From assembly GCA_964035545.1 (NCBI GenBank), contig OZ037771.1, positions 4,993,190 to 5,057,189 of the forward strand: a stretch of 64,000 nt of DNA, given 5' to 3'. Below are positions 39,613 to 62,731 of this stretch, piece by piece. Position 1 is the first letter of the stretch. Every line of letters begins with the position of its first letter. The notes beneath the pieces are model-generated. The model searched no databases, was not told the origin of the DNA, and saw only the letters and a list, made by a program, of their open reading frames with translations. Position numbers and translations under genes: made by a program. Source of the DNA: Bugula neritina (taxonomy: Eukaryota > Animalia > Bryozoa).

Positions 39613-39859
39613 ATCATTTGTTATTAACAGAGAGACACAGCTGTTGGTGGAAGCACTCTGGTATGAATCCTTCCGAAGTCTGGTTATGGCTCAAGTCTAA
39701 AAAACTCTTTACAAAGGAGGAAATAAAGAAGCTCTCTTCAGGTCGACCGATCACTGACCTTAGGATAGAGGGAGATCTGCCAGCTGCTGTTACAGAGTTT
39801 GCTCCACTTGTGACTAACCTGTATATTGAAGGCCTTACCAGTATCAACAGTTTGGAACA
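39613..39859 (+). CDS. Host LRR gene internal exon (N-terminal region/LRR cap)
   Basis: AG acceptor 39611-39612; open frame DHLLLTERH...LTSINSLE; phase-2 donor GTGAGT joins the LRR exons in frame. Confidence 0.75.
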
Positions 39860-40952
39860 GTGAGTCTATCATCACTTTGTTATCAACATGTTAAAGGTCA
39901 CAATATCTCTATCCTCTAGAACATGACTTCTCTTTGGATAATAACATGTACTTGAGTTATGTATTTAGCTGTCGGTTTTTCAGTTGTAACTCACTGACTA
40001 TTTACTAGGCCTGCACAGTGTCAGACTGCACTGCCAAATGATTAAATATGGTTAAAAATAATCATACATCGAAAAACATCAAAATTTGGAGTTGTGTCCC
40101 CTTTTTACTCGATGTAGTTCGGTGTCGGCTCTATTGGGGAAGCGATTACTCCCACCGGCATGCTTAGACAGCTCTGAATCATGTATCAATGTACTAATGT
40201 ATCAGCATACAAACCTCATTTTATAGCATTAGCTACCAACTCATATTTCAAATTCAGAAAATTGGATAGGAAAGCTGTTTCTAGGCTATTCTTGAAATAG
40301 ACTACTGCACTACACTGTTAACACTAACAATGGCTACACTGCTATATCAAATCTGTTTCACTACCTGCATGATTTACAACCACTGTAGCGTACGGTTGAT
40401 AGCTGTTGAGATAATTCACACTGCTTAGAGTTAGTCACTCTATGAATACCTCAGTATGACAGCAAGTTCCTTATATTCAAATTTTACAGGACAAAAATAC
40501 GCTATCAACTATAGGAAGCGAGTTTAACCTGCCAACATCGAAAACAATCAAAACGAGGAAAAAACATCAGTTTATTATATCTTATAAGCATGCAAGTGGT
40601 CACAAGTTTGTTTTTATGTCTGCGCTTCATTCCGGCCATAAAATGCTAGGACTGTTAGCATGTTCATCATAGTAGGTTTGAGACTGCAATGCTTCTTGCT
40701 GACAATATGGCCTGACAGCGAGAACAGTCTCTCAGATGCCACACTAGAGGCGCAGACACTGAAGACATTTTATGCAATTTGACTGTATGTAGGAAATTCA
40801 CACTGGTGGGTCTGCTACCAGGTAGTAATCTCGTTCTGCGCCTCACAAGTCAGACTCAGCAGGAATTCGAGCTGAAAATTTAAGCAAAGCATTCAATTGC
40901 AACATATCACAAGATATATTGAATATGAAGTTGTCAAATATGAATATCTAGC

Positions 40953-40958
<6 letters not shown>

Positions 40959-41006
<48 letters not shown>
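40959..41006. repeat. (TA)n microsatellite, left flank of the PLE
   Basis: Pure TA run. Confidence 0.95.
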
Positions 41007-41012
<6 letters not shown>

Positions 41013-41040
41013 GAAATAAAATGAGATTTGATTAATATAA

Positions 41041-41103
41041 TGGCATTTATTACTAGTAGTTTCGTACACAAGAACGATGTGCACTCGTCAGATAAATTAG
41101 CCA
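41041..41103 (-). ncRNA. Minimal type I hammerhead ribozyme in the PLE 3' repeat
   Basis: Reverse complement of the 43275-43337 copy; core intact. Confidence 0.85.
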
Positions 41104-43274
41104 CTATGATTGTTTACAACTATAAATAATGTAATATGTAAATATACACAGATTAAAGCTAGAAGATCAAAATATAACAAAAAGGTAGCATTGTAATTAG
41201 TTGGCTATGTTACAGCATTCTTGAGTAGAAATTTACTACTATGTCTGCATATGGATAAAAAGTCATAGCGCTTATTGAGGGAAGACAACTGTGGCTTATA
41301 AAGAATGAAAAATTTTTCCCATGAGCATAGCTGACAGATTTTAGTGTTGTTGTTGTATGGTTAAGTTTTTCTGAGAATTTTCCAGGATATGGTAAAATCC
41401 AGACCTTTGTCTTTTAAGGTCCAGATGTGTTTACTCAACTCAGTTTGCATGCACTTGGTTGGGTGTCTGAAAGAAGCAAGGTGGTTGTAGTATCTTGCCT
41501 TGAATGCAGTGGAGGAAATTCCTACATATGTTTCAGCAGTATCTTTTGATGGGACGAATACTTTGGCCTGGTACACAATGTTTGGGGTGGTGCATTCTCC
41601 TGGGAGCGGGCATGTCTTTACATTTCTACAGTTACAGCCTGCCTGTGATATAGGGGTGGTGTTGCATTTAGTAACACTTCTGTTGTGAGCAGTGATGGTC
41701 TGCTCTAAATTTGGGCAGCAACTGTAGCTGAGTTTGAGTGTGTTTTTATTAAATATTTTGTGCAGTGGGTGTTTGGTGTTGAATATATCTTTTATCAGCT
41801 TGAGGTATATGGAGCCGATTTTCGTCTTTACATTGCGGCTATAAGGTGGATTGTACCAGATGACTTGTCTTTGTCTGATGGGTTTGATGCTTGTATTGGT
41901 GTTGTCAGTATAGTCTTTGTATTTGAGTTGGTAGTCATATCCGCTTTTAGCCAAAGCATCTTGATATAGTGGGATGGCATTGTTGAAGATAGTTTCATTG
42001 GTAGATATGTCACAAAGTCTGCGGTTTATAGATTCTGGTATGTTATTCAGTATGCTGGGAGGATGGTTAGAGTCTTTGTGTACATACAGAGGGATGTTGT
42101 TGGGCTTGGAGTACGGTGTATGATGTTTCTTGACCAGATCTAGGGTGGTGTCTAAATAGTCAGTTGTTTTGATATTAACATCTATGGTGATCTTTAGACC
42201 GTGTGACTGGAATAATATGCAAAGATCTTTTTTCAGTCTTTCAGCTAGTTGTGGTTTAAGATCTGTTACACCTAGCCCATCGTCTCTATATAGTCCAATG
42301 TTAGCTTTGAACTTTTTTGAGATTTTACTTAACAAAAATAATCCTACTAATTCACATGTTTCAGCACCATCATGTGAGCCCATAGTGACGTCAAACAAAT
42401 TATCTGATTGTCTTTTACCCCAAAATGAGTTGTCATGCACCAATATGGATTTTTTTGTGTGCAATATGATATTCCGTTCGTGGTTGCTGACTGTAGTATG
42501 CAAGTTGGCAAAGTCGAGGGCATCAGATAGTAGCTTTGGCGATATAGATGGATAAAATTCCACAATATCGAACACGATAAAAGAGTGCCTGTTTGTGGTG
42601 GTCAAATTGTCAAACCAATGTAAAACTGCAGATGTGCTTTTCCACTGATTTAGGCCAAGTTTGCTGTTTATCGATGTATTAATTCTGTCAAGTAGTTGTT
42701 TACTCACCCTACCTATCTCTGGTTTGGTGGGGTTAATAAGGCGGCAGGTGGGGTTAGTTATGTAGTTAGCCTTATGATCCTTGATAGTAATGAAGGCGGG
42801 TTTCTTAGCTGTTATAGTAATTCTGTCATCAAGTTCCAATTGTTCAGCCATGGCTTTGTCCTCACTAGTGATGTTGGAGACTTTGTCATTTGATATTTTC
42901 TTATAGGTTTTAGTGATATTGTTAGTTAAGAGTCTGTCATACGATTCTTTGTCCATTTTGTAGAAATTGTTGCTTTTGTCTGCAGGCACTATTATATTGT
43001 CGCTCATGGTTATTTTATGCTTGATGTCGGAGGATAGCTTGTCTTGAAAGGTATTGTGGACATGTCTAAACTTAACAGATCGGATCATGTCAGCTAATCC
43101 TTGCTCGAAACTTTGCATAGCTGTGATCTGTGGTGGGGACTTTTTAGACCTACTCAAGAATGCTGTAACATAGCCAACTAATTACAATGCTACCTTTTTG
43201 TTATATTCTGATCTTCTAGCTTTAATCTGTGTATATTTACATATTACATTATTTATAGTTGTAAACAATCATAG

Positions 43275-43337
43275 TGGCTAATTTATCTGACGAGTGCACA
43301 TCGTTCTTGTGTACGAAACTACTAGTAATAAATGCCA
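43275..43337 (+). ncRNA. Minimal type I hammerhead ribozyme, inverted copy
   Basis: Stem I ATTTAT/ATAAAT plus TGGC/GCCA; CTGACGA; stem II GTGCACA/TGTGTAC; GAAA; short stem III CTA-C-TAG; GTA cleavage triplet. Confidence 0.88.
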
Positions 43338-43432
43338 TTATATTAATCAAATCTCATTTTATTTCTTCTAATGTTTACGCTCTAGATTTATTTCTATAGA
43401 GCACTCTAGTAACGTTTTATAAACACTCATTT

Positions 43433-43435
<3 letters not shown>

Positions 43436-43497
<62 letters not shown>
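43436..43497. repeat. (TA)n microsatellite, right flank of the PLE
   Basis: Pure TA run. Confidence 0.95.
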
Positions 43498-43501
<4 letters not shown>

Positions 43502-46151
43502 AATCTCAGTTTAAAATATTACAAATTGTTACTGTTATGTCATGTCACTACCTCTCGTTTCGATTTTTCCTCTGGAGTCAGAGAGACACTTTGGGTCTGT
43601 GACGGAGCTCCAACATTTTTTTGCTTACTCAACAGAATTGCTGCTAGGGAGGATTTCTTCGGCGCTCGCGATTCTGCAAATAAATTGACAAGTACAATCA
43701 TTAATCAATGTGATTATTTATGATAATAATGGTAACAATAATCATAGACTCTATAGAGTATAGACCATCACATAGATAGTAAATAATGATAATTTAGTTT
43801 GAATGAATAAAAAAATTAATTATTAATAATACTTACCAAGTGTAATAGTAATAGTAATAATTAATATTATTATTACTACTGCATGCAAACTTTTATAAGG
43901 GAGTATGGCCACTTCGTTGGCCCGACTGGCAATGATTCATTATTATAGATAATCAATTCAATCATTATTAGGCCTACAGCCTACTACCTCAGTATACTCA
44001 GACTGAGATTCTAAATAGATTCTACTACCTTAGTACATTATTTTTTATTAGTATTACTATTAAGAATAAAATCAAATCAATATGATTATTTATGATAATA
44101 ATGGTAACAATAATCATAGACTCTATAAACCATCGCATAGATAGTAAATACTAATAGTGATAATTTACTAATACTAATAGTAATAGTAATACTAATACTA
44201 ATAGTAATAGTAATACTAATAGTAATAATTAATATTATTATTACTGCATGCAAACTTTTATAAGTCCCCATAAAATTAGCTAACTCCTGTCCCACATTTA
44301 GTTAAGTTGGTATAGAAAGCCAGCTAACTCAACACCAACAGCAAAACATTACTCACTGCTTCATCAATCATTTGAATGTCATTATCAGCTTCAGCCATTT
44401 CTCTTGCTCCAATGCTTTACTTTCACCGCCTTTTCTGCTTATGCGCTAACAATAGTCTGAGGGACTAACTCCATTTTATGACACAGCAGCTACTTTACAA
44501 ATTCTAATACTCCTAACGGAGTGGCATAACGAACTAACTTAAGAAAAAAAAACAGTTAAAAAAAGAGAGAGCAACTCCAAGACACCGAAACTTCGGTCGA
44601 TGCACTGAACTGAAACTATAAGTTTATAGTTCAATGGGTCGATGGCTTTCGGTTGTTAATAAACTGATAATCAGTGATTCGATTGGTAGGTCACATCGAA
44701 AACATCGTTTACCATCGAACCATCGTGCAGGCTTACTATTTACTGAAATATTGAAATGTCTGGTGAGTTATACTTGTATGGCATGTCAGCAATATTCCTT
44801 CATATCTCTACTGCACCTGAGTAGTCTTTCTGTTCCCCTTGAATTATAGAAGTGAGTGCTGTATATATTAGGAAATTTGGAAAAGTCTGTATGCTTGATG
44901 AGAAAAAGTGCAAACTAAATTATGTTCAACCGAACCCCTAAAAAGAAATTCATAAAAACCGGTAAAGAATTGAATTTGAAGAGTATAGAATTTTTTCCAT
45001 TGTTGCACTTATATAGAATTATATTAGTTTGAGCCGAAGCTGTTGGGGAAGAGGTCAACAATGACTTCTGGTGACTCACACATCATAGCTGATTACCTGC
45101 AGTGGGGATAACTTTTAATATTTATTCTGCCAGTAGAGAAATGGGTAGTTGTATATTCATTAAGGAAATCACAAATCAAATATAATTTTACCTGCACAGC
45201 TTGTAGCCTTAGGTTTGTTTCATATTCTTCAAAGTATTCACTGCTATTAGTTTTGTCTCCGTTCCTTCTAGTGTATTATCCGTGCTTTAGAAGTTGTTTG
45301 AGTTGCTAAAATTGTGAGATAAAATTATACATTTTTCGATCAAATGAAATATAGAGTAAAACAATCAACTATATTTAATATATTCTGAACACAGCTATAG
45401 TTTATATATACTGATGAGTAATAATCTAGAATCACTCTGAAATAAGATCTCCCTTCCTACCTATCAGCATTATCTCAATTGTATCCCCAGCTTTTATAAT
45501 CACTTTATACTTAGTCCAGGGATGTGAACACTTTATTCTTATTATCTCAAAGTAGTTGTTGGACTTTTCATTACTTGGGCCTACCTGTTACTGCCTGCCT
45601 TACAGCTACTATCACACCTATGGCCAGTTTTATACTGCATCATAATTTACTTGCATCAGAGTCAAGTTTAAGTGAATTGAAACTACAGAGATGTATCTTC
45701 TCTTGTTTTCTCTCCAGGTTTTTCCTCGCCTTCTGTAATCAGTAATTCTCAGGTGGCTGCCTTGGCAGCAAAACCTGGTCATACAGAGTAAAACCCATCT
45801 TCAATATTCTCTTTACAGGAAAATTGTTACAACTGCTGTTGATTTAGCAATTTGTTACAACTGAATCATCTTATCTCTTAAGAAGCACTTTCTTCTCATA
45901 TATACTTTGATCTAATCGCTAATTTTGTATGTATACCACATTCTCTCTGTGTTCTAATTATATGTAAAAATATATTAGAGTAGAATAAAACTGATCTAGT
46001 AGTCCCAGCATACCAACTCTTTAATTATAAATTGAATTCATAAAACACAAATAACTGACACAATTCATACTTGCAGAGCAGAAATAATAAAAGGTCACTG
46101 CATGTTCAACATAATATTCCTACAACAAGGTTTATTGTATGTATATTACAG

Positions 46152-46289
46152 TCTCTCTCAACTCACACATCTACACACATTAGTTGTGTCTCGTAATAAG
46201 TTAGGAACATTACCTGAGGTGATACCAAAGATGAAGTCACTTACAGAGTTACATCTACAGTTCTGTGACTTACATACATTACCAGACAG
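46152..46289 (+). CDS. LRR exon 1 (138 nt, two 23-aa LRRs)
   Basis: AG|...|GTGAG, phase 2-2; LSQLTHLHTLVVSRNKLGTLPEVIPKMKSLTELHLQFCDLHTLPD. Confidence 0.92.
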
Positions 46290-47323
46290 GTGAGTTATAA
46301 CATGTTCACTGCTTTTACTTAAACTGTATAGATTAGTAATACTAAACACAACTTTTCACCTTTCTCACCTAATTGACTATAGTCCTGCAAGGTGGCCGTT
46401 CTGCAAGCTCCAAGCTCAATTACGCTCGGCTGTGGACTTATTCTTGCTTAAGGCTACAGTACTTCTTGGTAGATTTTATAGTATGTTTACATTTGTCAGA
46501 TTTTTAATATCTCCATATACCACTGATTCTTATTCATTAGCATTGAGGTTAATATCCTTATCTTTTCTTTTTTGCAAACATGGCAATACCACTGCAGGCA
46601 TTCTTTCTCCATGTCTGTAGGTATTCGTTTCACCTCAGCCTGTTGTCTGATCACATCATGTTCAATGTGCTCCTCGTAAGTTATCCAAAATATGTGTCTC
46701 ATTTTTACTGTCTTCATCCCGTCTTCCATCCTAAGAGTAACTGACCAGGTTTCATTACCATACAGAATGGATATTCTAAACAGAAGTACTGTATATTTAG
46801 TTGATACCTTCTCATCACACAGCATTTCTGAGAGATCCTTCAGCTTGTCTCAAGCCACTCCAATCCTCCTAGCTACTTCAGGGCCACAACCCACCATTCT
46901 GATTATTATAGTTGCAAGGCATTTGAAAGCACTAGTCCCAGGCAGATCACTGTAGGTATCTCAGTCATAGTATTTTTTTCTTCTCCTTGTTATCTTTTTT
47001 CACTGGTAGCATGTACTCAGTCTTGGTTGTGCTTCTTATTTTCTTTTCTCTGTTCTTCTAACATATCACTCTATTTGCCTATCCATTGCACAGCATTACG
47101 TCATCTGCAAATTGCATGGCCCATTGGCATTGGCCGGGAAGCTTGAAGTTTGGAACAGCTAGGAGGGTCATTAAAGTTCCAAGTTCCAAGTCTCAGGCAG
47201 TTAGCTGTATTTTTCTCAATCCTTATTTTTGTTTTTCACCTCATATAACCTCACAGTATGTTTAACATAATATTCCTGTAACTTGTATAATTATGGTCAT
47301 GGTATATTGTATGTATATTACAG

Positions 47324-47461
47324 TCTCTCTCAACTCACACATCTACACAAATTAGATGTGTCTGGTAATAAGTTAGGAACATTACCTGAGGTGATACCAA
47401 AGATGGAGTCACTTACAGAGTTACATCTAAAGGACTGTGACTTACATACATTACCAGATAG
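47324..47461 (+). CDS. LRR exon 2
   Basis: Same structure; KLDVSGN and ELHLKDC. Confidence 0.92.
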
Positions 47462-48483
47462 GTGAGATATATTAGTCATATATGTTCTACTATTATGTAA
47501 ACATATAATAAAGTATAATAGAACTGATACTAGTAGTCCCAGCCTGCCAAATTTACAGTAATAAAGTTGATACAATTTATCAACAAACCTCCCACCTTTC
47601 TAGCCTAGACCACCCTCATTTCTTGTTAGATTATATTGTATGTTTCCATTAGTCTGATTCTCCCTTATCTCTATTTACCATTGACTTCTATACATTGTAA
47701 TTGAGGCTAATATCATCATCTGTACTGCAAACATGTCTATACTGTTGCAGGTCTCTTCTCATGTCTGTAGATATTCGTTTCACCTCAGCCTGTTATCTAA
47801 TCACATCATGTTCAATGTGCTCCTCATAAGTTATCTAAAAGATGTGTCTTATTTCTGTTGTCTTCATCTTGTCTTCCATACCATGAGTAACTGACCAGGT
47901 TTCATTACCATACAGAATGGATATTCTAAACAGAAGTACTGTATGTTTAGTTGATACCTTCTCATCACACAGCACTTCTGAGAGATCCTTCCACTTGTCC
48001 CACACCACTCCAGTCTTCCTAGATACTTCGGGGCCACAACCCACCATTCTGATTTATTATAGTTATAATTTCATTCTATTAATTTCCAATCTAATTATAC
48101 AGTTTTCTTGTTTTGGCCAACTCTTATAAGTTTTTTGCTTGAATCTCTTGTAGGTATTCATAGAATATTTCATATGCCTTTACTTTACTTAGGCTTTTGC
48201 AATTTTGATTGTTGTCTGTTATTCTCACTGTATCATTTCTCTGTCATCTTTCCTTATTCCATCTAAAGAATTTCTCATCTCTTGGAGCTCAGCATTGCCT
48301 CACCAAGACTGCTATTTTTGACACCTGTTGAAAATGCCGATTTTCTTTTTGCTATCCGTACTGCACACTAATAACTGACAATCCATACTTGCAAAGCAAC
48401 AAGAAAATGCTCACTGGGTGTTTAACATAGCATTCCTGTAACTTGTATAATTATAGTCATGGTTTATTGTATGTATATTACAG

Positions 48484-48621
48484 TCTCTCTCAACTCACAC
48501 ATCTACACACATTAGATGTGTCTGATAATAAGTTAGGAACATTACCTGAGGTGATACCAAAGATGGAGTCACTTACAGAGTTACATCTAAAGGACTGTGA
48601 CTTACATACATTACCAGACAG
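48484..48621 (+). CDS. LRR exon 3
   Basis: Same structure; TLDVSDN and ELHLKDC. Confidence 0.92.
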
Positions 48622-49570
48622 GTGAGATATATTAGTTATATATGTTCTACTATTATGTAAACATATAATAAAGTATAATAGAATTAATACTAGTAGTCCC
48701 AGCATACCTACTCTAGCAATAAAGTGAATACAATTCATCAACAAACCTCCCACCTTTCTTGCCTAGACCAACTCTCATTTCTTGTTAGATTATATTGTAT
48801 GTTTCCATTAGTCGGATTCTTTCTTGTCTCTATTTACCATTGACTTCTATACACTGTAATTGAGGCTAATATCATCTTCTTCTTTCCTGCAAACATGTCC
48901 ATACTGTTGCAGGTCTCTTCTCATGTCTGTAGATATTCGTTTCACCTCAGCCTGTTATCTAATCACATCATGTTCAATGTGCTCCTCGTAAGTTATCCAA
49001 TAGATGTGTCTTATTTCTGCTGCATTCATCTTGTCTTCCATCCCATGAATAACTGACCAGGTTTCATTACCATACAGGAGGTAAGGTTTTATGAAATTGT
49101 GGTTGAAATAGTATTGCTATCTTCTTTTTTATATTTTCCTCATCTGAGAGCATTTTATTCTCTTTATCTTTTACAAATTTCTTTCTGTCAATATCTAAAA
49201 GTTGTCTTTTTCTTGTTGTGGCCTGCTGGTATAGGTTCTTTGCTTTGTTCTCTTGTAGGTTTTCATCTAACCCCTCATATTCCATTTTGTTGGCTTTTAC
49301 TAATTCATCTTCTGCGTGTTTGTTTTTCTTTTTATATTCTCTTCTCACTGCTCCTAGATGTTTTCCATCTTTTGATACCTTTTTTTCAATTAGAAACTCA
49401 TGTACCTCAGCATTCCTTTTCTGTATATTTGCCACCTGTTAAAACTGCAGTTTCTCTTTAGGCTATTATTACTGCCCACAATTAACTGACACAATTCATA
49501 CTTCCAAAACAACAGCAATATAAAATCACTGTATGTTTAACATAATAGGCCTGTAACTTGTATATTACAG

Positions 49571-49708
49571 TCTCTCTCAACTCACACATCTACACACATT
49601 AGATGTGTCTGGTAATAAGTTAGGAACATTACCTGAGGTGATACCAAAGATGGAGTCACTTACAGAGTTATCTCTATGGAGCTGTGACTTACATACATTA
49701 CCTGACAG
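49571..49708 (+). CDS. LRR exon 4 (not in the ORF track on the plus strand)
   Basis: Same structure; TLDVSGN and ELSLWSC. Confidence 0.92.
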
Positions 49709-49944
49709 GTGAGATATATTAGTTACATATTGTCTACTACTATGTAAACATATAATAAAGTATGATATAATTAATAATAGTAGTCCCAGCATACCAACTC
49801 TCCAATAATAAAGTGAATATAATACTAAAACAGAGATAACTGAACAATTCATACTTGCAAAACAATGATAATATAAATCCACTTCATTTTTAGCGAAATA
49901 TTGTTGTATAATTATGGTCATGGTATATTGTATGTATATTATAG

Positions 49945-50082
49945 TCTCTCTCAACTCACACATCTACACACATTAGTTGTGTCTGATAATAAGTTAGGAA
50001 CATTACCCGAGGTGATACCAAAGATGGAGTCACTTACACAGTTATATCTAGTGCACTGTGACTTACATACATTACCAGACAG
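49945..50082 (+). CDS. LRR exon 5; gene continues downstream
   Basis: Same structure; TLVVSDN and QLYLVHC; donor present, no stop in the spliced frame. Confidence 0.92.
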
Positions 50083-51477: not shown

Positions 51478-52121
51478 TGATAGTTTTGCAATTATACAAT
51501 TTCCATATGTTGCAATCGTATTATAGTAAATCCAAAGTTTTCAAATGTAATAAAATCTGCAAATTATAAATCAATACTCAATTTTTCACTTTAATAGTTG
51601 TACTGTTAAAGGATTGCTCTATCTTGTCTAATGAATGGCCATTTAGGTCAAACACACATAATATTGTGTTTTTCTAAGCATGCATTGACAAAAAGCATTT
51701 GACCAAAGGTAGAAAAAGTTAGTTGAAGTTGAGGGTGTAGATTGGTAACAGCCAAAACGCCGATTTTGAAATGAGCTGGGAAATGTGACGTAACAGCGCC
51801 AGCATTCCTGCTGGTCACGTGACTATACAAATGAATAATTATAGAAATATGACTGTGAGATGTGATCTTTCAGCTCGTAATTTGTATATTTATAGAAGTG
51901 CAAATGTGAATTTTCTCAATCTATAGTTTTTTGACATTTTAAATAACATGTATGTGATAAAATTAGGCCATATTTTGCTTGTAAACATTAGAAAAAAGCA
52001 TTGCAAAAACATGCATTCTTTAGGATGAATGCCTGCGATCGATCTAAACTAGGTCAGATTGTGCAATATTAAGGGCACACCAAATCTGACCTATATAGCT
52101 CGCTGTAACTGCTTGAGCGTT

Positions 52122-52730
52122 AGTAGTAGGAAGTGGTTGGTTCTGGGACAACCCCTTCCCCCGTCGAGTCTTTGACTCTCCGGTGTCAGGAGGTTGTCCC
52201 AGAACGCAACATTATTCTACTACTCTATTATGTCCCAGAAATTATATGCTCTGGGACAAATATTAATTTTTTATTCACTCGTTACTATTAGTAAGATAAT
52301 ACTTCCTACTACTCTATATTATTTTATTGAGTTTTCAATGTTTGTCCCAGAAATTGTATGTTTCTAGGACAATATTAATTTAGAATATAAATATTTTATT
52401 GAGTTTTTAATGTTTGTTCCAGAAATTGTATGTTTCTAGGACAAATATTAACTTTTTGATGTTATCCTAGAATGCATTCACTCTTTACTATTAGTAAGAT
52501 AATAAATTATTATATGTATAGTGAATATAATAATTTAATACGCAATAGTGTTTAAACGTTATAACTTGGAAATATAATTTCTGGGACAAATATTAATTTT
52601 GTCCCAGAAATTATATGTTCTAGGACATAGAATATTGTCCCAGAAATTATATGTTCTAGGACAAATATTAATTTTTTATTCACTCGTTACTATTAGTAAG
52701 ATAATACGTTGAGAATATAATAATTTAGTG
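52122..52730. repeat. Polinton terminal region with palindromic and tandem repeats
   Basis: Many TTCT(G/A)GGACAA / TTGTCCCAGAA units; terminal AGTAGTAGGAAGT inverted at 52301-52313. Confidence 0.8.
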
Positions 52731-52731
52731 T

Positions 52732-53093
52732 TTAAACGTTATAACTTGGAAATACGGGTTGAGATTCAGTAGATTCTATTATATCACCATCGCTCGTTGA
52801 TATTACTAATTTATTACCAACTGCTCCTTGTAATTTAGGAATAGCGTGATTATTTATATTATAAGTAGTAATAATATCTGCAATGCTTATACCGGTTTCT
52901 ACGATATTACCATCGCTCGAAAGCATTAATAATTTACCTCCGATTGACGGTTGTATTTTATTCATAGCGAAATTATTTATATTACTAGTCGTAATAACAT
53001 CGCTAACGCTTAAGCTACTATCTATAACATTACCCGAAGTAGTTGAAACGGTTAATTTTTCATTTGTGGGTTTCGTAAAAGACGAGTTTGGGT
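52732..53093 (-). pseudogene. Fragment of a repeat protein, possibly fibre/spike-like
   Basis: Three units of about 36 aa, KLxxSxxxGx(V/I)(I/V)(D/E)..., truncated at the junction with the integrase. Confidence 0.45.
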
Positions 53094-53094
53094 A

Positions 53095-53925
53095 TCGGGT
53101 ATTGATAATATTTGGGCGGTCGATTTGGTTGACATGACCGAATTCGCTAAATTTAATAACGGTTATAAATATTTACTAACGGTAATAGACGTGTTTTCAA
53201 AATACGGTTGGATAATACCTTTAAAAAATAAAACCGGTAAAGCCGTTGCTGTAGCTTTAAAAACAATTTTAACTCGTCGTAAGCCTCAACATTTATGGGT
53301 TGATAAGGGAAAATAATTTTATAATAAAGACGTAAAGTCCTTAATAGACTTATATTCTACGGAAAATGAAGAAAAGTCTAGCGTAGTAGAGAGGTGGAAT
53401 AGAACTATGAAAGAGCGAATGTTTAAATATTTTTCGGCTAATAATACTTATAAATATATAGACGTACTATGAGATTTAGTAAAACGGTATAACGAGACTA
53501 AACATTCGTCTATTGGAATGACACCGATTGAAGCTAGTGATCCTTCTAACGAAAATAAAGTACGCATGAAATTGTATCCAAACTTACCAGTACCTTCTAA
53601 ACCTAAATTTACTATAGGTGATAGGGTGCGTATACCTCGTAAAAAACGAACGTTTGAAAAAGGTTATACCGTTAGATGGATGGAGGAGGTGTTTACTATA
53701 AGTAAAATATTATATACGAATCCAACGACTTATAAATTAACTGACTCGGGAGGAGAAGAAATTCAAGGATCTTTTTATGAACAGGAATTACAAAAGACGA
53801 GTCAAGAAATGTATAGAATAGAGCGCGTAATTAAAAAGAAAGGTAAAAAGGCTTTAGTAAAATGGTTGGGTTATCCCGAGTCTCAAAACTCGTGGGTAGA
53901 TTTAAATGTTTTAGAACGTTTATAG
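53095..53925 (+). pseudogene. Retroviral-like integrase with C-terminal chromodomain, N-truncated, two in-frame stops
   Basis: IWAVDLVDM, IDVFSK, WVDKG, VERWNRT, FEKGY and LVKWLGYP...NSWV motifs. Confidence 0.92.
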
Positions 53926-53987
53926 TAAACACAAATGTGTTCGTGTCCATAAAAAGTAGACACAAATTAAACGTAAAGTAGACACAA

Positions 53988-54590
53988 ATGTGTTTGTGTC
54001 CAAGCTTTCAACCGGCTATAACTGACGGAGTCATAAACTTAGACGTAAATACTCAAACGGCTTTAGCGGGTTTAGAATTTGGGGCTTATAACGTAAAATG
54101 GGAAAATGATAAATACATTATTGGTACTAAACCTATACAATTTAATGACGGTAAAGTTATATTTAATAACGAGGAATGCTTAGCGACTAAAGGACTCTTG
54201 AGCCTTTTAACGCGTAAAATACCTATGAATTACGACGATAATGATATAGAAAATTATAGCGATATACTTTATGATGCTGGAGCGATTTATCAAAGTAAAA
54301 ATACTCCCGTAGATAAAAATAGTTATAAGTGGAAACATATTGTCAGACCTATTTGGGAAAAATTATATCCAAAGAGAGCTAAATCCGCCGATTATAAAAA
54401 AGCCAAGAGGGGAAGCGGAGTAGTTTATTTATCGTCTGACCCTAACGCTTTAGTAGAACGACTTCAACTTTTAATTTCTAGCGCTAGAGCCGGAAATACG
54501 GGAGTGCAAAACGAAATTGTGGCTATATTAGACGAATTACTTAGAATGAAAATTATTACTCATGACTATTATAAAAGTATTCTCATATAA
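53988..54590 (+). CDS. Uncharacterised Polinton protein
   Basis: C-terminal GSG...SDPNALVERLQLL...AGN...NEI...LDEL motif that I recognise from Maverick ORFs; start uncertain. Confidence 0.65.
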   Translation: MCLCPSFQPAITDGVINLDVNTQTALAGLEFGAYNVKWENDKYIIGTKPIQFNDGKVIFNNEECLATKGLLSLLTRKIPMNYDDNDIENYSDILYDAGAIYQSKNTPVDKNSYKWKHIVRPIWEKLYPKRAKSADYKKAKRGSGVVYLSSDPNALVERLQLLISSARAGNTGVQNEIVAILDELLRMKIITHDYYKSILI

Positions 54591-54593
54591 TAA

Positions 54594-54914
54594 ATGTATG
54601 TTTACGATAAAAGACAACGATTACAAAGACACTACGCCGGTGGTGGAATATTTGACACCATTAAAAATGTAGTAACTAAAATAGCTAGTAATTCCAGTGT
54701 AAGAGAATTAGGTAAAAAGGCTATAACTAAAGCGGGTACCGCGGCTAGTGAAAAAATTGTTAATGCTATTGAAAAAAGAAGGGAAAAAAAGTTAAACGCT
54801 AAAAGTCAAGCTATACTACAAAAGCTTAATCAAACTAAAAATATATTAAAAGTACTTAATAATAATAATATAAGTAATATTTTAGAAGGTTCTGGCCAAG
54901 CTATAGCTTATTAA
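54594..54914 (+). CDS. Small basic virion protein with predicted amphipathic helix
   Basis: AGG|GIFDTIKNVVTKIAS: possible protease site followed by an amphipathic helix. Confidence 0.6.
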   Translation: MYVYDKRQRLQRHYAGGGIFDTIKNVVTKIASNSSVRELGKKAITKAGTAASEKIVNAIEKRREKKLNAKSQAILQKLNQTKNILKVLNNNNISNILEGSGQAIAY

Positions 54915-54935
54915 GAAATTATTTTACTATAATAA

Positions 54936-56210
54936 ATGGACTCTTTGAATATTACGCATAAAATTGTAACTGATACGAGCGTAGAGCGTGATCAGGTACA
55001 CGAATACGAACCCGTAACGGGAACGAATTTAAATTGCCCCGGTGAAATTAGAATAGTTATTAATCAACAAGATTTGTACGTTCAGCCGAGTAAAAGTTAT
55101 TTGATTATCGAAGGACGTTTAACGAAAAATGACGGAACCGCTTACGCTGACGCCGACTTAGTAACGTTAATTAATAACGGTATGGCTTATTTGTTTAAAA
55201 GTATTAGATATCAACTTGACGGACACGACTTGGAATATATAAATAATCCCGGACACGCTTCGACTATGATGGGTTTACTAACTTATCCCGATGATTACGG
55301 CAAGTCGAGAGGTCTTAACCAGTTATGGTCAAAAGACACTACCGCAGCCGCTGCCGCCGCTAATTTAGGTTTCGCGGCTTGTCAAGTTTATTTGATACAA
55401 AAGCCCGACCCTAAAGGAACTTTTAGTATTAAAGTAGATCTTAGGCATTTATTTGGTTTTGCCGACGATTATGAAAAAGTTTTGTACGGTATAAAACACC
55501 AACTAACGCTAGTTCGCGATACCGACGATAACGCCATTTATAGAGCTAACGGTGTAAATGCGGAAAAAATAACGTTGGATAAAGTGTCGTGGTGGATGCC
55601 TCATATAACTCCAAGTTTTGAAATGAAAAATAAGCTCTATAAGATTATAGAGAGTAAAACTCAACTTCCAATGATATATAGATCTAGATGGTGTGATAGT
55701 ATTGCTGTGCCGCAAACTACAAATTTTACGTGGCATTTGGGTTCTAGAGGAGATACGGAAAAACCTAAATATATTATCGTAGGTTTTTAAACGGATAAGA
55801 CGGAAAGTCAAACGACTAATCCGGCCGTATTCGATCACGTTAACGTTAAAAGCGTATACGCGATGTTAAATAGCGAGCGGTATCCCGAGGTTGATTACGA
55901 TATAGATTTCGCTGAAATGAAGTTTAGTAGAGTGTATGGAGACGCTTCGAAATTTTGCGGAGATTATTACGGTATAAACGAGCTAATCGCTTATTCAAAC
56001 GTATTACCTTCGGAATATAACAATTTTTACGCTTTGTTCGTAATAGACGTTAGTAAGCAAAGCGAGACTCTTAAAAATAGCGTAGCCGACATTCAACTAA
56101 GAGTTCAATTTAGTCAAAACGTGCCGGCTAATACTCAAGCTTACGCGTTAATTTTATCCGATAAGACTATGTCTCTCACTTCCGATGGAAATAATTTAAA
56201 AGTTATATAA
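54936..56210 (+). pseudogene. Major capsid protein (double jelly-roll), one in-frame TAA at 55788-55790
   Basis: Two ORFs in one frame, about 424 codons; HLFGF, KP.YIIVGF, LNSERYP and FVIDVSKQ motifs typical of Polinton MCP. Confidence 0.85.
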
Positions 56211-56967
56211 ATGGATAATAAAATTTTAAGAGAAATTGCCGATAATATGGCCTCTAAACAAACAATGACTATAGGAGTTACCGATACTAAAACGAGAATA
56301 ATTACTCAACTTAATCCGCCTATAGAATTAAATAAAAAAAAAATACGAAATGTGTCTTATTAGTTTAGATACGTTTTATTCTTTTCCAAACATTAGTGCC
56401 GATAGAAATTCCTATAGATGGTCTAAAGACGGTGGTAATACGTGGTATTTAGTTTCGTTACCGATTGGAGTGTATGAATTAGATCAATTAGAACAAGCTA
56501 TTCAAGACGAAATAGTAAAGGAGGGGGGTAATAGAAACGGTATTACTTTACAAGCTAATAAGGTAACTTTTAGAATCATACTTAAATTAAAACCTAATTA
56601 TCGAGTAGATTTTAACGTTGAAAATTCTATAAGAGACGTTTTAGGTTTTGATGCAAAAATATTCGATCAACCTTATATCGAAGCTACGAACATAGTAAAC
56701 ATTTTAAATATAAACGCTATACACGTACAAGTTGATTGTATTAACGGAAGTTATATCGATGGTACTTATAAACCCGTTATTTATTCATTTTTTCCGAGCA
56801 TTAGTCCGGGATATAAAATAATAGAAAAACCTCATAATTTAATATACTTACCCGCTCACGTTAAATATATCAAGACGTTAACCGTTACAGTAACTGATGA
56901 AAAAGGTAATTTATTAGATCTTAGCGGTGAACAACTCTCAATAAGATTTCATTTAAGAGAAGTTTAA
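56211..56967 (+). pseudogene. Minor capsid protein (penton-like), frameshift in a poly-A run near 56340
   Basis: YSFPNI, LPxGxY, VLGF, PGYKIIEKP and DEKGNLLDLSGE...FHL motifs; follows MCP. Confidence 0.75.
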
Positions 56968-56979
56968 TGTATTATATAA

Positions 56980-57549
56980 ATGGGTTATTGCGAAATTATA
57001 GGAAACGTGCCACAGGCGCAAAAACAAAAAATAATGAACGCTTATAGAAGCGGTAAGGGTTGTACTATTAAATTGCCTCTCGAAAGCGGAAATGATAAAC
57101 TAGCCGTTACGAAAACGCAAAACGATAATATTTTAAAAGCGATGAATGCTAATAAAAAAAATATAACGCTCGAAATGTCTCCATCGTTAGTAAAAACTAA
57201 CGCGTCAATGAACGGAGGATTTTTAGGACCTCTATTGGGTATAGCTACGAGAGTAATACCTACGCTATTAAAAACTATTATACCGGGTGTGCTTTCCGGA
57301 GCCGCTAGCGCCGGAGTCGAAAGTGCTATTAAAGGTAAAGGTCTTTATTTGAAAAAAGGCGGGTGCGTATGTTCCGTAGAACCTAATTTAAACGGTTCTA
57401 TTACTTTAAAACCAGTCGCACCGTCTAATTTAATGAAAGGTAACAGTTTATATTTAAAACAAGGTTCTAGCTATATAAAAGGCGAAGGTTTAATTTTAGG
57501 TCCGAATAGTCCGTTTAAAAATATTCCTCTTTTAGGCATGCTGCTATAG
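56980..57549 (+). CDS. Putative core/membrane-active precursor protein
   Basis: NGG|FLGPLLGIATRVIPTLL amphipathic segment; repeated KG(K/N/E)(G/S)L motifs. Confidence 0.6.
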   Translation: MGYCEIIGNVPQAQKQKIMNAYRSGKGCTIKLPLESGNDKLAVTKTQNDNILKAMNANKKNITLEMSPSLVKTNASMNGGFLGPLLGIATRVIPTLLKTIIPGVLSGAASAGVESAIKGKGLYLKKGGCVCSVEPNLNGSITLKPVAPSNLMKGNSLYLKQGSSYIKGEGLILGPNSPFKNIPLLGMLL

Positions 57550-57568
57550 TTAAAGAAAACATATATAA

Positions 57569-57967
57569 ATGGTTGACCCAACAGTAATTATTTATAAAAG
57601 CCTCGACGGCACCCCAATTACCGAAACGATATATAAAAACAATGATTGTGAAAAACGAGTATACGAAAGCGGTGATATTAAAGAAAGAATTATATATAAA
57701 ATATTTAATATAATAGACGAAATGAATAATCCGTCTAACGAGCGCGGAACGTTTGAAGAAATTACTTATAATAATAAAAAAGAAATTATTTATAAAGACG
57801 ATGATAAAAAACTGAAAATAAAAACTATCTACAAAAGTAAAGAAATAATTCAAGAACTTAACGTAGGTTTAATAAGTTATGCAGCGGCTAGAATACCATT
57901 ATTCTTTACTAAACTAAAATACGCTGAAGACGAAATAGAAAAAAGACGAAATAAAAATATATTATAG
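57569..57967 (+). CDS. Hypothetical Polinton protein
   Basis: Intact ORF with TAAATG start; also open in the inverted copy. Confidence 0.6.
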   Translation: MVDPTVIIYKSLDGTPITETIYKNNDCEKRVYESGDIKERIIYKIFNIIDEMNNPSNERGTFEEITYNNKKEIIYKDDDKKLKIKTIYKSKEIIQELNVGLISYAAARIPLFFTKLKYAEDEIEKRRNKNIL

Positions 57968-58109
57968 TTTAAAGAATAAATATATAAATATGCGTATAAT
58001 ACAGCACACGTAATTCGCTCTTAAGACCGACTATTACGCGCTATTTAGCAGCCTATACGGATAATTTTTATATTGAACTCCCTTTTTTAATTAATTATAA
58101 TATAATTAA

Positions 58110-58589
58110 TTAACAAACGTTATTACGAGCGACTATTATATCGCTTTTTTTATTCGATATTACGCTATTAATATCTTTATATTTTTCGGTTATAGCGTCG
58201 TACTCTTGTTCGTCTATATGAGCGTCACTTAAAAATTTTGATAACATAGAATTAATTTCTAATTTAGAATCTTTTATAAACGTATATACGTCTAAATACA
58301 TTAATGTAGATTTAATTAATTTAGCGTCTTGAGAAGAAATAGAAGTAGTAATTACACTCATTATACTTACTATTATAGATAATGGTAATAACGTTTGTTT
58401 AGTAACGTTAGCGTTTAATAACGCCGTAATAATAACACCGCATATTAAATTCGTTGTACCGCATAATCCTGAAATTATTTTTAACAATTTTGATAACCAA
58501 TTAAAACGATTAAGTTTTTGTTCGTATTCGTTTTCTAATTTAATAATTTCATCGTTTAAGAGTTCTAATTTTTCTCGTCGGAAGTCCAT
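58110..58589 (-). CDS. Coiled-coil plus two-transmembrane hypothetical protein
   Basis: Two hydrophobic segments; TAAATG start. Confidence 0.65.
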   Translation of the reverse strand: MDFRREKLELLNDEIIKLENEYEQKLNRFNWLSKLLKIISGLCGTTNLICGVIITALLNANVTKQTLLPLSIIVSIMSVITTSISSQDAKLIKSTLMYLDVYTFIKDSKLEINSMLSKFLSDAHIDEQEYDAITEKYKDINSVISNKKSDIIVARNNVC

Positions 58590-58633
58590 TTATATAAAAA
58601 AAATTGATTTTTATTATTACGTTATTTTTTAAT

Positions 58634-58870
58634 ATGGAGTTTACTAATGAATTACTCGATAAACTAATAGTCCAAGCTAAACAAAAAAAATATATACCTC
58701 TTCCCGAACATACATTTATGCGATTAACCGATTATTATACCTTAAAAATTAATTCAATGTCAAATGAAGATCGTGATAAATTATTTAAACATTTAAATAA
58801 AAGTTTAACATCACGACGTAAAGTAACTAAACTTATAGCGCGAATAAATAAAATTCTTGAAGATGTATAA
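58634..58870 (+). CDS. Small hypothetical protein upstream of PolB
   Basis: ATG at 58634, preceded by AAAATTGATTTT. Confidence 0.5.
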   Translation: MEFTNELLDKLIVQAKQKKYIPLPEHTFMRLTDYYTLKINSMSNEDRDKLFKHLNKSLTSRRKVTKLIARINKILEDV

Positions 58871-58923
58871 AACCAATTTTTTATTTAAAAATTGATTTTA
58901 CCATTTAAAGAAATTATATATAA

Positions 58924-61900
58924 ATGGAGTTCAATACAAAGATTACCGTTAAAGCCTTAAAGGCGCTAGCTAAAGAAAGAGAATTGAAACGATATTCTCG
59001 ATTAAAAAGAGCTGAACTTATGCAGCTCTTAATGGTTGAAGATAATTTCAAGTCAATTAAAGACTTGAAAATCTTAGTTAAAGAAAGAGGATTTAAGCGA
59101 TACTCTAGCTTAAAAAGAGCTGAACTTATACAGCTATTAAATATTATGGACGAACCCGTTCCATATATAGGGCAAGCCCCGTTAATACCTATACCCGCGA
59201 AAAAAATTATGCGAGAAATATTTACGCAAACTACGCGTAATATAAAAAAATGGGTTAAGGGTATTATAAAGCCAATTATAAAAATTATAAATCCAATTAA
59301 GGATGAAATTATGGCTTTATATAATCAGCCTAAGCTTATAGAACAAGACGCTAATGGTTGGTTTAAAACTTACGAAATTAAAGGTTTGCCTAAGTACGAT
59401 ATTGACACATTTGGTAAACTAGTAAAATTAAATATACTAGAATTATTAAAACCTACTATGAAAGTTAAAATATTTATGTATTGCGAAATGAAAAAAATTA
59501 ATGTAAGTACCGGAGAAACTATTGTAGAAACTATGCCATTTACATCAAATGTTGAAACTATATTAGAGTCTACGAATGTTGATGAAATATACGATGAAAT
59601 AATTGAACGTATAAAAGAAAATTTTGCTTCGTTAAACGCTTAAGGAAGTAACTGGATATTTAAATCCATTAAAAAAATGAATATTAACATTAATAAATAT
59701 CAACCTTTTAATGGGTCATCGTGGATTGATCTTCCGAAAGAAATTAAATTAAAGAAAGCCGTAATAAATCCTAAAAATGAGGATAACGAATGTTTTAAGT
59801 GGGCCGCTTTAATGAGTGTTCATACACCTAAAAACCATCCCGGAAGAATTAGTAATTATAAAGAACACGTTAATAAATTTTCGTGGGAAAGCGTTGAATT
59901 TCCAGCTACTAAAAAATCTATTAACGCTTTTGAAGACGCTAATCCCGATTTCAGAATTAATGTATTTACGTGGGATGGCGAAACAATAAATTTATGGAAA
60001 AAATCTAAAAATCAGGGTAGAATTATAAATTTACTTTATATAACTAATGACGAAAAGAGTTATTACGCGTATAATAAAAATTTAAATAGATTACTCGGTT
60101 CGCAAATAAACAAACGTACTAATGTTAAACATAGTTGTGTAAATTGTATGAGCTCGTTTAGATCTAACGAATCTTTAAAAAAGCATCAAGATTGGTGTTT
60201 ATCGAACGATAGCGTAACTACGGTTTTTCCTAAGCTAGAAAATAAAATAAAATTTCAATCTAGCCATCATTGTCGTAATATGAGAGTGCCATTTACGGTA
60301 TACGCGGACTTTGAATGTTTTACTAAACCAATATACGGTTGTAAACCTAATTCGAGAGAAAGTTACACTAATCAATATCAGCAACACGAACAGTCGGGTT
60401 TCGGATATTATATAGTAAGCGTTATTGGTGAGTGCAAATACAGAAGTTATACTAAGCAATACGAAAATGAAGATATTGGTGAATTGTTTATTAGGTTACT
60501 AGAACTCGACATTAAAAACTTGTATAAAAAACATAAATTTGCTAAACCAATGAAAATTACAAATAGTGAGCAAGAGTCTTTCAAGTTGGCTAAAATCTGC
60601 TGCATATGTGAAGAAAAATTGGGTAATGACAGAGTAAGAGATCACTGTCACTTAACCGGAGACTATAGAGGAGCGGCTCATAGTAATTGCAATTTAAATT
60701 ATAAAATTCCAAAATTTTATCCGGTGTTTATTCATAACTTGTCGGGTTACGACGCTCACTTATTTATTAAAAATTTAGGTGGTGAACCTTCGTGTATACC
60801 CAATACCGAAGAGAAATATATATCTTTTAGTAAAAAATTATTGGTAGACGATTTTACCAATAAAGAAGGTAAAAACGTTAAAGTTACGCGCGAAATTCAC
60901 TTTTTAGACTCATATAAATTTATGAGTTCTAGTTTAGCGAGTTTAGTAGCAAATTTGAAACGCGATAACTTTAAACACTTGCAAAAGCATTACGCGGAAA
61001 ACCAATTAAACTTATTATTAAGAAAAGGAGTATTCCCCTACGACTATTTTAATAACGTAAGCGTGTTGGATGAAACGTCTTTACCTCCTAAAGAAAAGTT
61101 TTATTCGAGCTTAACCGAAAAAGGTATTTCAGACGAAGATTACGCGCACGCTCAAAACGTTTGGAAAACTTTTAATATGAAAACGTTTTGAGACTATCAC
61201 GACTTATATATGAAAGTTGATGTAATTCAATTAGCCGACGTTTTTGAAAACTTTAGAAGTGTATGTCTTGAACACTACAAGTTAGATCCGACTTGGTATT
61301 ATACGGCTCCGGGTTTAAGTTGGGACGCTATGCTTAAAACTACTAAATTAGAGTTAGATCCAATTACCGACATTAATCAATTACTTTTCTTTGAAAGAGG
61401 AATTAGAGGCGGTGTAAGCATGATTAGTCATAGATACGCTAAAGCTAATAATAAATATATGGAAAACTATAACGCTAGCGAGCCTAGTAGTTATATTACT
61501 TATTTGGACGCTAATAATCTATACGGTTGGGCTATGTCAGAAAACTTACCTACGGGTAATTTTAAGTGATTAAGCGAAAAACGGTGTAGTAGTCTAGAGA
61601 AAGCAAAAACATTTCCGCCTAGCTTTTTAGAAGTAGATTTGGAATATCCTAAAAAGTTACACGACTCTCATAAAGATTATCCGTTCTGTCCCGAGAGATT
61701 AACGGTTAATAAAGTGGAAAAACTAATTCCAAATTTAAACGATAAAAAGAATTACGTTATACACTATAGAGCATTAGAACAATGCCTTATATACGGTTTA
61801 AAGCTAACGAAGATTCATAAAGGTATAACCTTTAACGAGTCTAATAAACTTAAAGAGTATATAAGTTTAAATACTGAGTTAAGGACTCTAGCCAAGAGCG

Positions 61901-62691
61901 ATTTTGAAAAAGACTTCTTTAAGCTAATGAATAATTCCGTGTTTGGTAAAACGATGGAAAATATTCGTAATAGAGTTAACATTAAATTGGTTACTAGCGA
62001 AAGCGAAGCTAAAAAATTAACGAATCAACCTAACTTCAAAAATTATACGATATCTTTTTTCGAAAATCTCGTAGCCGTTCATATGAATGTAACGAAACTA
62101 AAATTTGATAAGCTCGTATATTTAGGCGCAGCAATTTTAGACATTAGTAAAACTCTAATGTATAACTTTCATTACAATTATATTAAACCAAAATATATTG
62201 CAAACGCGCAGTTGTTATTTACGGATACGGATAGTTTAATGTATCACGTACAAACAAAAGATTTTTACGTGGATATAGCTCCAGACGTTGCTAGCACGTT
62301 TGACACGAGTAATTATCCTAAAAATCACTCATTACCAACTGGTGTAAATAAAAAGGTAATAGGCATGTTTAAGGATGAAGCCGGCGGTAAACAAATTACT
62401 GAATTTGTTGGATTGAGAGCTAAGTTGTACTCTTATAAAATGGATGGCGTAGAAGAGAAAAAGTGTAAGGGTATTAATAAAACTACGCGTGATAATCGTA
62501 TAACGTTTGAGGATTATTATAACTGTCTTATTACTAGAAAAGATCAACATAGAACGATGAATGTGTTGAGAAGCCATAAGCATACAATGTATGCCGAAAC
62601 AATAAATAAAGTAGCTCTGTCGGCTGAAGACGATAAGAGAATAATACTAGAAGATGGAATAACAACGATTTCTTATGGTTATAATAAATGA
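58924..62691 (+). pseudogene. Protein-primed family B DNA polymerase, one frame with three in-frame stops
   Basis: YADFE, HNLSGYD, FLDS and KGVFPY exonuclease-region motifs; YLDANNLYG, KLMNNSVFGK and TDTDS polymerase motifs; EndoVII-like RDHCH...AHSNCN; two N-terminal helical repeats. Confidence 0.95.
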
Positions 62692-62731
62692 GTATAAAGT
62701 TATCAAATAAGCTCGATAGAGCTTATGTGAT

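Follow-up and report, generated by a model that had tools for sequence, protein, structure and literature searches.

Leucine-rich-repeat cassette exons with a hypervariable predicted binding face in a probable LRR-Roc-COR-caspase gene of the bryozoan Bugula neritina

Background

Why should five short exons that are otherwise nearly identical differ in just those codons that are predicted to face a ligand? The question is raised by a stretch of 64,000 nucleotides from Bugula neritina (assembly GCA_964035545.1, contig OZ037771.1, positions 4,993,190 to 5,057,189 of the forward strand), here called the window; coordinates on its contig carry the prefix C7. An initial annotation, made from the letters alone, had noticed five tandem exons of 138 nt, each encoding leucine-rich repeats (LRRs), and had proposed that they belong to a diversifying immune receptor. 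We find that these exons, termed cassettes below, probably make up the variable section of the LRR arm in a single Bugula neritina gene, for which the sequence suggests the layout LRR - Roc GTPase - COR - caspase. In the family to which they belong, the codons of the predicted binding face evolve about 8 times faster than the synonymous sites of the exon, and about 3-5 times faster than the flanking introns.

In LRR structures, the xxLxLxx positions are placed on the concave face. In plants and animals alike, innate immunity is built around fast-evolving LRR sensors that are linked to a nucleotide switch, and the known animal versions use STAND ATPases, with caspases recruited through adaptors. 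ROCO proteins, which include LRRK2, DAPK1 and bacterial and archaeal Roco, use another switch, the Roc GTPase. A further kind of LRR repertoire is that of the VLRs, whose cassettes are unspliced donor pieces copied somatically into an incomplete germline gene.

No description of LRR-Roc-COR-caspase genes in bryozoans or in Bugula, or of Roc-COR plus caspase in amphioxus, was found in the searchable literature, where absence is not proof. Specific to this locus are the restriction of the cassette type to two gene clusters, the contrast in rates measured on 37 cassettes, and a Polinton inside the gene.

Results and discussion

Five cassette exons in the window

The five cassettes (Table 1) constitute repeat family D1 and follow each other at spacings of 1172, 1160, 1087 and 374 bases. 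A 34-nt probe gave exactly five matches in the window, with none expected by chance, and no sixth or decayed cassette was detected inside the window. With a slash marking the exon border, the cassettes open with ..ttacag/TCTCTC (..ttatag/ in exon 5) and close with CAG/gtgag. The introns are in phase 2 at both ends, the opening base finishing a split codon AG/T for Ser. Any cassette can therefore be dropped or repeated in frame, as had been stated in the initial annotation.

Only one frame is open in each cassette, and its product, LSQLTHLHxLxVSxNKLGTLPEVIPKMxSLTxLxLxxCDLHTLPD, amounts to two LRRs of 23 residues with two motifs of the LxxLxLxxNxLxxLP type. Cassette exon 2 was matched by Pfam LRR_1 at 26.4 bits (cut-off 20.6) as well as by LRR_4 and LRR_8, and was in register with the solved 23-residue LRR proteins 4u08, 4u06 and SHOC2 (7t7a). 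Leptospira LIC11098 was also among the solved LRR proteins that aligned in register.

Five near-identical exons with three synonymous differences had been reported, and both the positions and the counts are exact. The five exons have 15 variable columns, three of them synonymous (codons 21, 44 and 45) and 12 causing a replacement. The amino acid changes had further been described as clustering at the xxLxLxx positions, and indeed 11 of the 12 replacements fall in codons 9, 11, 14, 32, 34, 36 and 37, the remaining one being a K/E change at codon 28. Expressed in bases, 11 of the 21 in these seven xxLxLxx codons are variable, against 4 of the 117 elsewhere (Fisher p = 6e-8).

An LRR arm followed by Roc, COR and caspase

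The gene to which the cassettes probably belong, here gene A, was searched exon by exon. Upstream of the cassettes we place a probable first coding exon (Table 1), whose open frame and ATG are conserved at equal length in the paralogues B and C described below and in the NCBI contig VXIV02002257.1. It aligns collinearly with gene C at 88.7%, and Pfam gave no match for it. The two bases left over at its end (CA/) combine with the T that opens any cassette. As the cassettes run T..AG/ and the Roc-COR exon opens with ag/T GTC GGT, the phases fit, and the first exon, cassettes in any number and the Roc-COR exon form one frame.

The Roc-COR exon of gene A starts 7.4 kb beyond the window end, has an open frame of 647 codons and also carries two more LRRs. 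Roc was matched at 30.5 bits (Pfam cut-off 27) and COR-A (PF16095) at 34.3 bits alone or 39.3 bits together with the in-frame neighbours (cut-off 35.3), while the match to COR-B was weak. The motifs GRSLSGKT, DFGG and THRD are intact. The nearest solved relatives are the Roco proteins of Chlorobium tepidum (3dpu, 6hlu, 8r4b) and Methanosarcina (4wnr). The only NTPase matches in this exon, which comes after the cassettes, were to Roc and to the general GTPase family MMR_HSR1.

Caspase p20 (Pfam PF00656) was matched on two exons, at 36.1 and 49.9 bits and covering profile positions 1-130, and the catalytic His (FAHG) and Cys (QACRV) are kept. A conserved open frame (L032:2423-2554) is a candidate for the p10 part, being p10-like by eye only. 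Thus, among the downstream partners for which a search had been proposed, Roc-COR is present and is followed by a caspase, and no NACHT, TIR or death domain was found.

Two observations concern the end of the annotated caspase. The frame of the last annotated caspase exon stops one codon earlier in gene A (..ENLVH and stop) than in gene C and the NCBI protein (..VHR and stop; L032:1850-1870). At 0.5 kb 3' of the stop in gene A lies the p10-like conserved open frame (L032:2351-2554), so the true donor is probably ahead of the ..ENLVH stop.

The Roc-COR exon is 89% identical to the NCBI protein EB796_002463 of Bugula neritina, which has Roc, COR-A and caspase Pfam domains. Among the sequencing runs that contain the stretch are samples labelled 'symbiont metagenome'. 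The NCBI annotation of a paralogous locus (GCA_010799875.2, VXIV02002257.1:42553-65689) consists of an LRR-only model of 528 aa and a separate caspase model of 505 aa, and model EB796_002463 begins within the intron preceding the Roc-COR exon. Because the models are split or start late, the full LRR-Roc-COR-caspase layout is invisible in the deposited proteins. The order of cassettes and then Roc-COR is the same in paralogues B and C and in the NCBI contig.

Nine genes in two clusters

A search of the genome with one cassette gave at least 40 copies at 89-100% identity, all on contig C7, which is the contig of the window. The 138-nt cassette type is confined to nine genes in two clusters on this one contig. 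Cluster 1 (C7:5.039-5.105 Mb, plus strand) holds genes A, B and C, and cluster 2 (C7:7.589-7.726 Mb, minus strand) holds the six genes D-I. Between 2 and 6 cassettes were found per gene, and matches to COR-A (PF16095) and caspase (PF00656) lie downstream of every cassette group. The NCBI contig VXIV02002257.1, at 88-92% identity, is a different paralogue and not the same locus in another individual.

Gene A lines up with both neighbouring paralogues, B and C. Compared with gene C, the only breaks in collinearity are two transposon insertions, and cassette exon 4 is collinear with cassette 4 of that gene. In a tree of the flanking sequence, cassette 5 clusters with its terminal counterparts in paralogues B, C, D, E and H. 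Beyond this group of last cassettes the tree is unstable, as the introns are of different kinds, and no order of duplication was drawn from it. Despite their related flanks, the last cassettes differ at most variable positions (A5 VDQYVH, C5 DRQSED, B3 DGEYMK). The six variable residues of cassette exon 1 recur in I1, the first cassette of the minus-cluster paralogue I.

Integrity and transcription of the copy in the window

Every coding exon seen of gene A is open, its splice sites are canonical and its catalytic motifs are intact. In the Roc-COR exon, omega of gene A against B and C is 0.34-0.48 at a synonymous divergence (dS) of 0.12-0.13, which is no worse than that of B against C and shows the genes to be under constraint. 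Judged by these features, the gene A copy looks intact.

Transcription was assessed in two runs that are metagenomic RNA-Seq by library label only, using short assembled contigs. In these RNA-like runs the cassettes have depths of hundreds to thousands and the introns depths near zero; the bin 47357-47543 has a depth of 2460 versus 0.64 in the next bin, whereas a DNA-like run of the assembly's own study gave 1725 versus 607 in the same bins. The RNA-like contigs include cassette-to-cassette junctions, and in one of them the N exon of a paralogue (..AGTTTAGAATA) is joined straight to a cassette. The exon-limited depth and the junctions together indicate, at the level of the family, that the cassettes are transcribed and spliced as modelled.

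Gene A might still be a silenced or decaying member of this transcribed family, with its cassettes as relics and proper expression stopped by the 19.6-kb Polinton and the 4.7-kb element described below. Both of these large transposons lie in introns of gene A and are absent from the paralogues, the flanks are dense in transposons, with the 38 kb upstream being transposon sequence throughout, and none of the RNA contigs could be assigned to gene A, because the cassettes are multi-copy. Insertions in introns need not abolish splicing, however, and decay is hard to reconcile with open exons and canonical splice sites throughout those examined, with an intact ATG, P-loop, DxxG, THRD and caspase His and Cys, or with an omega no higher than between B and C. 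We therefore consider silencing of this copy unlikely.

Other points also weigh against reading the locus as a functional receptor gene of the LRR-Roc-COR-caspase type. COR-A taken alone is slightly below its Pfam cut-off. The candidate p10 has no Pfam match, and its sole hint from PDB, caspase-4 p10 at E = 1.3, is weak. The placement of the variable residues on the concave face comes from the register of the LRR motif (positions 3, 5, 7 and 8 of xxLxLxx) and not from a structure. Finally, a role in immunity or cell death is one that we infer from the logic of the domains and the pattern of selection only.

Selection on the predicted binding face

The selection set comprised 37 cassettes, which represent all nine genes and were taken from 3-kb loci of the cassette matches and from the 60 kb that follow the window; it lacks three of the 40 matches. 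Nonsynonymous divergence (dN) and dS were calculated by Nei-Gojobori, and intron p-distance over flanks of 100 nt. Unless the five window exons are named, the values below refer to this set.

Amino acid entropy is 1.0-3.3 bits at six hypervariable codons (11, 14, 32, 34, 36 and 37) and at most 0.7 bits at every other codon. The six codons correspond to motif positions 5 and 8 in repeat 1 and to positions 3, 5, 7 and 8 in repeat 2. An extension to more exons with dN/dS had been suggested as a check of the initial annotation, and the variation stays concentrated in the wider set.

At the six variable codons dN is 0.63. The framework has a dN of 0.020 and a dS of 0.077, and the p-distance of the flanking introns is 0.19-0.23. 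The contrast is also present among the five window exons, where the six codons of a mean pair differ by 6.2 replacements and 0 synonymous changes, and the other 39 codons by 0.8 replacements and 1.2 synonymous changes. When pairs were binned by intron divergence, the divergence of the variable codons was already 0.37 in the bin of 0.05-0.10 and flat thereafter, and that of the framework was 0.02-0.04 across all bins.

A separate observation concerns the quiet part of the exon. Synonymous and framework divergence (0.02-0.08) does not climb with intron divergence (0.04-0.35). That the framework, including its synonymous sites, varies less than the introns suggests gene conversion or a constraint at the nucleotide level, e.g. 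from splicing signals; the two could not be separated.

Growth of the array and origin of the variants

Over about 0.7 kb, which is not the whole unit, units 2 and 3 are 94-95% identical; this part includes the intronic retroelement-like fragment treated below. Of the 138 exon bases, three distinguish these units, and two of the three belong to binding-face positions: codon 9, with T/K, and codon 14, a hypervariable one, with G/D. Given this near-identity and the point differences, duplication of a unit followed by point change is directly visible here. Growth of the array by duplication of exon-plus-intron units is thus supported by the sequence.

The 37 cassettes have 35 different combinations of the six residues. 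The variable sites are independent of each other except for codons 36-37 (p = 0.002) and 34-37 (p = 0.03), and this independence fits either exchange of short tracts or saturation by recurrent change. It had been proposed that the two halves of the exon reassort, on the grounds that KD, DVSG and SD are each shared by two exons. The data are compatible with this, but exchange is not demonstrated by it, since the shared halves are simply the commonest states (the D-G state occurs in 7 of the 37 cassettes) and the sites are unlinked except between neighbouring codons.

The third base of the variable codons had also been described as fixed. In the larger set the minimal changes at the variable codons are 16, 11 and 8 at positions 1, 2 and 3, about as expected from ordinary point mutation that is retained when the residue changes. 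The fixed third base was accordingly an effect of the small sample, and a special mutator, of which it could have been the mark, is not needed for this spectrum.

All diversity seen lies between germline copies. An alternative is that the cassettes are combined in the soma, by exon choice, by recombination among the at least 40 cassettes or by targeted mutation, so that cells or zooids would carry different receptors. Its attraction lies in the build of the array, as the cassettes are phase-symmetric, their splice sites are near-identical and any subset is in frame; moreover, one RNA-like contig runs from the end of exon 1 straight into the start of exon 4 with a GT..AG joint, and alternative splicing is reported for brown-algal ROCO genes (PMC11378527). 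The joint, however, was placed at 90% likeness, and the family has at least 40 cassettes that are almost alike; its source may be a paralogue that has such cassettes side by side, and it cannot be told apart from a normal transcript of one. Nor do fixed germline copies, a codon-position spectrum that fits ordinary point mutation, or cassettes with normal splice sites, ordered inside a complete gene and unlike the donor cassettes of lamprey VLRs, speak for somatic combination, which we regard as highly improbable.

Relaxed constraint on the exposed residues of a scaffold LRR protein, with neither selection for diversity nor a role as receptor, is the least credible explanation: exposed positions can accommodate many residues in any LRR protein and no ligand is known, but relaxed constraint cannot surpass the neutral rate, and the variable codons are well above it, with 0.63 versus 0.077 at synonymous sites and about 0.2-0.25 in introns, with saturation at 0.37 while the introns have diverged by only 0.05-0.10, and with nearly as many residue combinations as cassettes.

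From the proposal of a modular, diversified LRR receptor, the modular arm, the fast codons of the binding face and the duplication of units are thus retained, and alternative splicing, somatic change and targeted mutation are without evidence. For the germline gene we propose the following mechanism. The array would have grown by tandem duplication of exon-plus-intron units together with whole-gene duplication. New residues on the binding face would be fixed by diversifying selection, and purifying selection, probably together with gene conversion, would keep the framework uniform. The protein may act as a cytosolic sensor in one chain, with the ligand bound on the concave LRR face. Binding would alter the GTPase and the dimer state of Roc-COR, by which the caspase domains would be brought together and switched on, leading to cell death or immune signalling.

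Comparison with known systems

The closest published analogue is the brown-algal LRR-ROCO family of Ectocarpus, in which one LRR is encoded per 72-nt exon, exons are shuffled, genes are clustered and the concave face is under positive selection (Zambounis et al. 2012, PMC3341825; 2024 follow-up, PMC11378527). Both systems have short repeated LRR exons upstream of Roc-COR, positive selection on the predicted concave-face codons of these exons, and clusters (two clusters with nine genes in Bugula) with rapid birth and death and with duplication or shuffling of exons. The Bugula cassettes differ in carrying two LRRs per 138-nt exon, in having an animal as host and in having a caspase as C-terminal effector. 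The Bugula genes would work alike but stand outside the algal gene family, and, compared by shared domains, design and description, the two arrays most likely arose independently. Prokaryotic conflict systems, too, are described as having Roc-type 'AP-GTPase' proteins whose LRRs evolve rapidly and whose C-terminal effectors vary (Kaur et al. 2021, PMC8195603).

With ROCO proteins in general, the Bugula genes are predicted to share the order of N-terminal LRRs, Roc, COR and then a variable C-terminal effector, Roc and COR being in one exon. They differ in that the effector is a caspase and not a kinase, that the LRR arm consists of hypervariable cassette exons, and that the genes form a large, clustered and fast-evolving family.

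NLRs, the apoptosome and inflammasomes provide a parallel to the proposed function. There, too, an LRR sensor and a nucleotide switch that drives oligomerisation lead to activation of a caspase, the LRR face is under diversifying selection and the genes are clustered. In Bugula, however, a Ras-like Roc GTPase with COR would serve as the switch and not a STAND ATPase (NACHT or NB-ARC), and the caspase is predicted to be in the same chain and not recruited via CARD, PYD or death-fold adaptors, none of which was seen.

The VLRs of lamprey and hagfish resemble the Bugula genes in their hypervariable concave-face LRR residues and in the many near-identical LRR cassettes in the genome. The Bugula cassettes are, in contrast, ordinary AG/GT exons, ordered and in one orientation within a complete gene, and no sign of somatic assembly of the VLR type was found in the germline gene layout.

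In this bryozoan gene a Roc-COR GTPase is thus predicted to be paired with a caspase in the same chain, and the sensor is diversified by cassette exons as in brown algae. If the proposed function holds, this would be a third way, built independently, of obtaining a large germline repertoire of death or immune receptors, and also a simple system in which to follow how a Roco GTPase of the LRRK2 type passes ligand binding on to an effector. Should somatic mixing of cassettes be true after all, a lophophorate animal would have an anticipatory repertoire. As Bugula neritina relies on a bacterial symbiont, a large family for intracellular recognition would also be relevant to the control of this symbiont.

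Transposable elements in and around the gene

The coordinates of the cassettes, the first coding exon and the transposable elements are collected in Table 1.

Table 1. Features of gene A and of the transposable elements in the window. Positions are those of the window unless prefixed with C7; in the remarks on cassettes, the slash separates the variable residues of repeats 1 and 2, and in the first coding exon it marks the exon border.
Feature	Position	Strand	Remarks
Probable first coding exon	39663-39859	+	ATG at 39663; 66 residues; donor CA/GTGAGT
LRR cassette exon 1	46152-46289	+	variable residues V R / E H Q F; K at codon 28
LRR cassette exon 2	47324-47461	+	variable residues D G / E H K D; K at codon 9
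LRR cassette exon 3	48484-48621	+	variable residues D D / E H K D
LRR cassette exon 4	49571-49708	+	variable residues D G / E S W S
LRR cassette exon 5 (last cassette)	49945-50082	+	variable residues V D / Q Y V H
Transposon-like insertion, 4.7 kb, first intron	40007-44734		inverted ends GGCCTGCAC..GTGCAGGC; repeated TTACT-type flank
598-aa open reading frame (ORF) inside the 4.7-kb insertion	41361-43157	-	Cys-rich C-terminal part; no Pfam match
Retroelement-like ORF fragment, cassette intron 1	46496-46825	-	resemblance to reverse-transcriptase tails only; no Pfam match
Polinton/Maverick-like element, 19,623 bp	51610-64000, on to C7:5064421 (C7:5044799-5064421)		intronic, between cassette 5 and the Roc-COR exon
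Double jelly-roll (DJR) capsid gene of the Polinton-like element	54936-55787		Pfam DJR-like, 3e-27
Polymerase-like ORFs of the Polinton-like element	59677-62688		

The 4.7-kb insertion is missing from the collinear intron of paralogue C. The Polinton-like element extends 7.2 kb past the window end; its ends are inverted over about 16 nt (AGGATTGCTC.ATCTT), with TTAA on both sides. The empty site is found in genes B and C and in the NCBI contig VXIV02002257.1, and the insertion is clean. Through this insertion the last intron of gene A has grown from about 1.7 kb to about 21 kb.

The retroelement-like fragment of cassette intron 1 has homologous pieces in intron 2 (47712-48054) and intron 3 (48874-49077), and also in intron 2 of paralogue C. 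Its presence in introns 1-3 and in paralogue C indicates that it was inserted before the gene duplications and was copied together with the exon units. The repeat families D3 and D4 are 77-94% identical between cassette introns.

Within the Polinton-like element, two ORFs, 56980-57967 (plus strand) and 63096-63984 (minus strand), are near-identical inverted copies about 5 kb apart (MVDPTVI.. and ..LESGNDKLAVTK..), which points to a long internal inverted duplication in the element or to two nested copies. At the other end of the window, positions 1-32000 are occupied by nested copies of long terminal repeat retrotransposons, which account for most of the DNA ahead of the gene; they are GC-rich (50-59%, against 31-36% GC in the host background) and carry gag-protease-reverse transcriptase-integrase ORFs.

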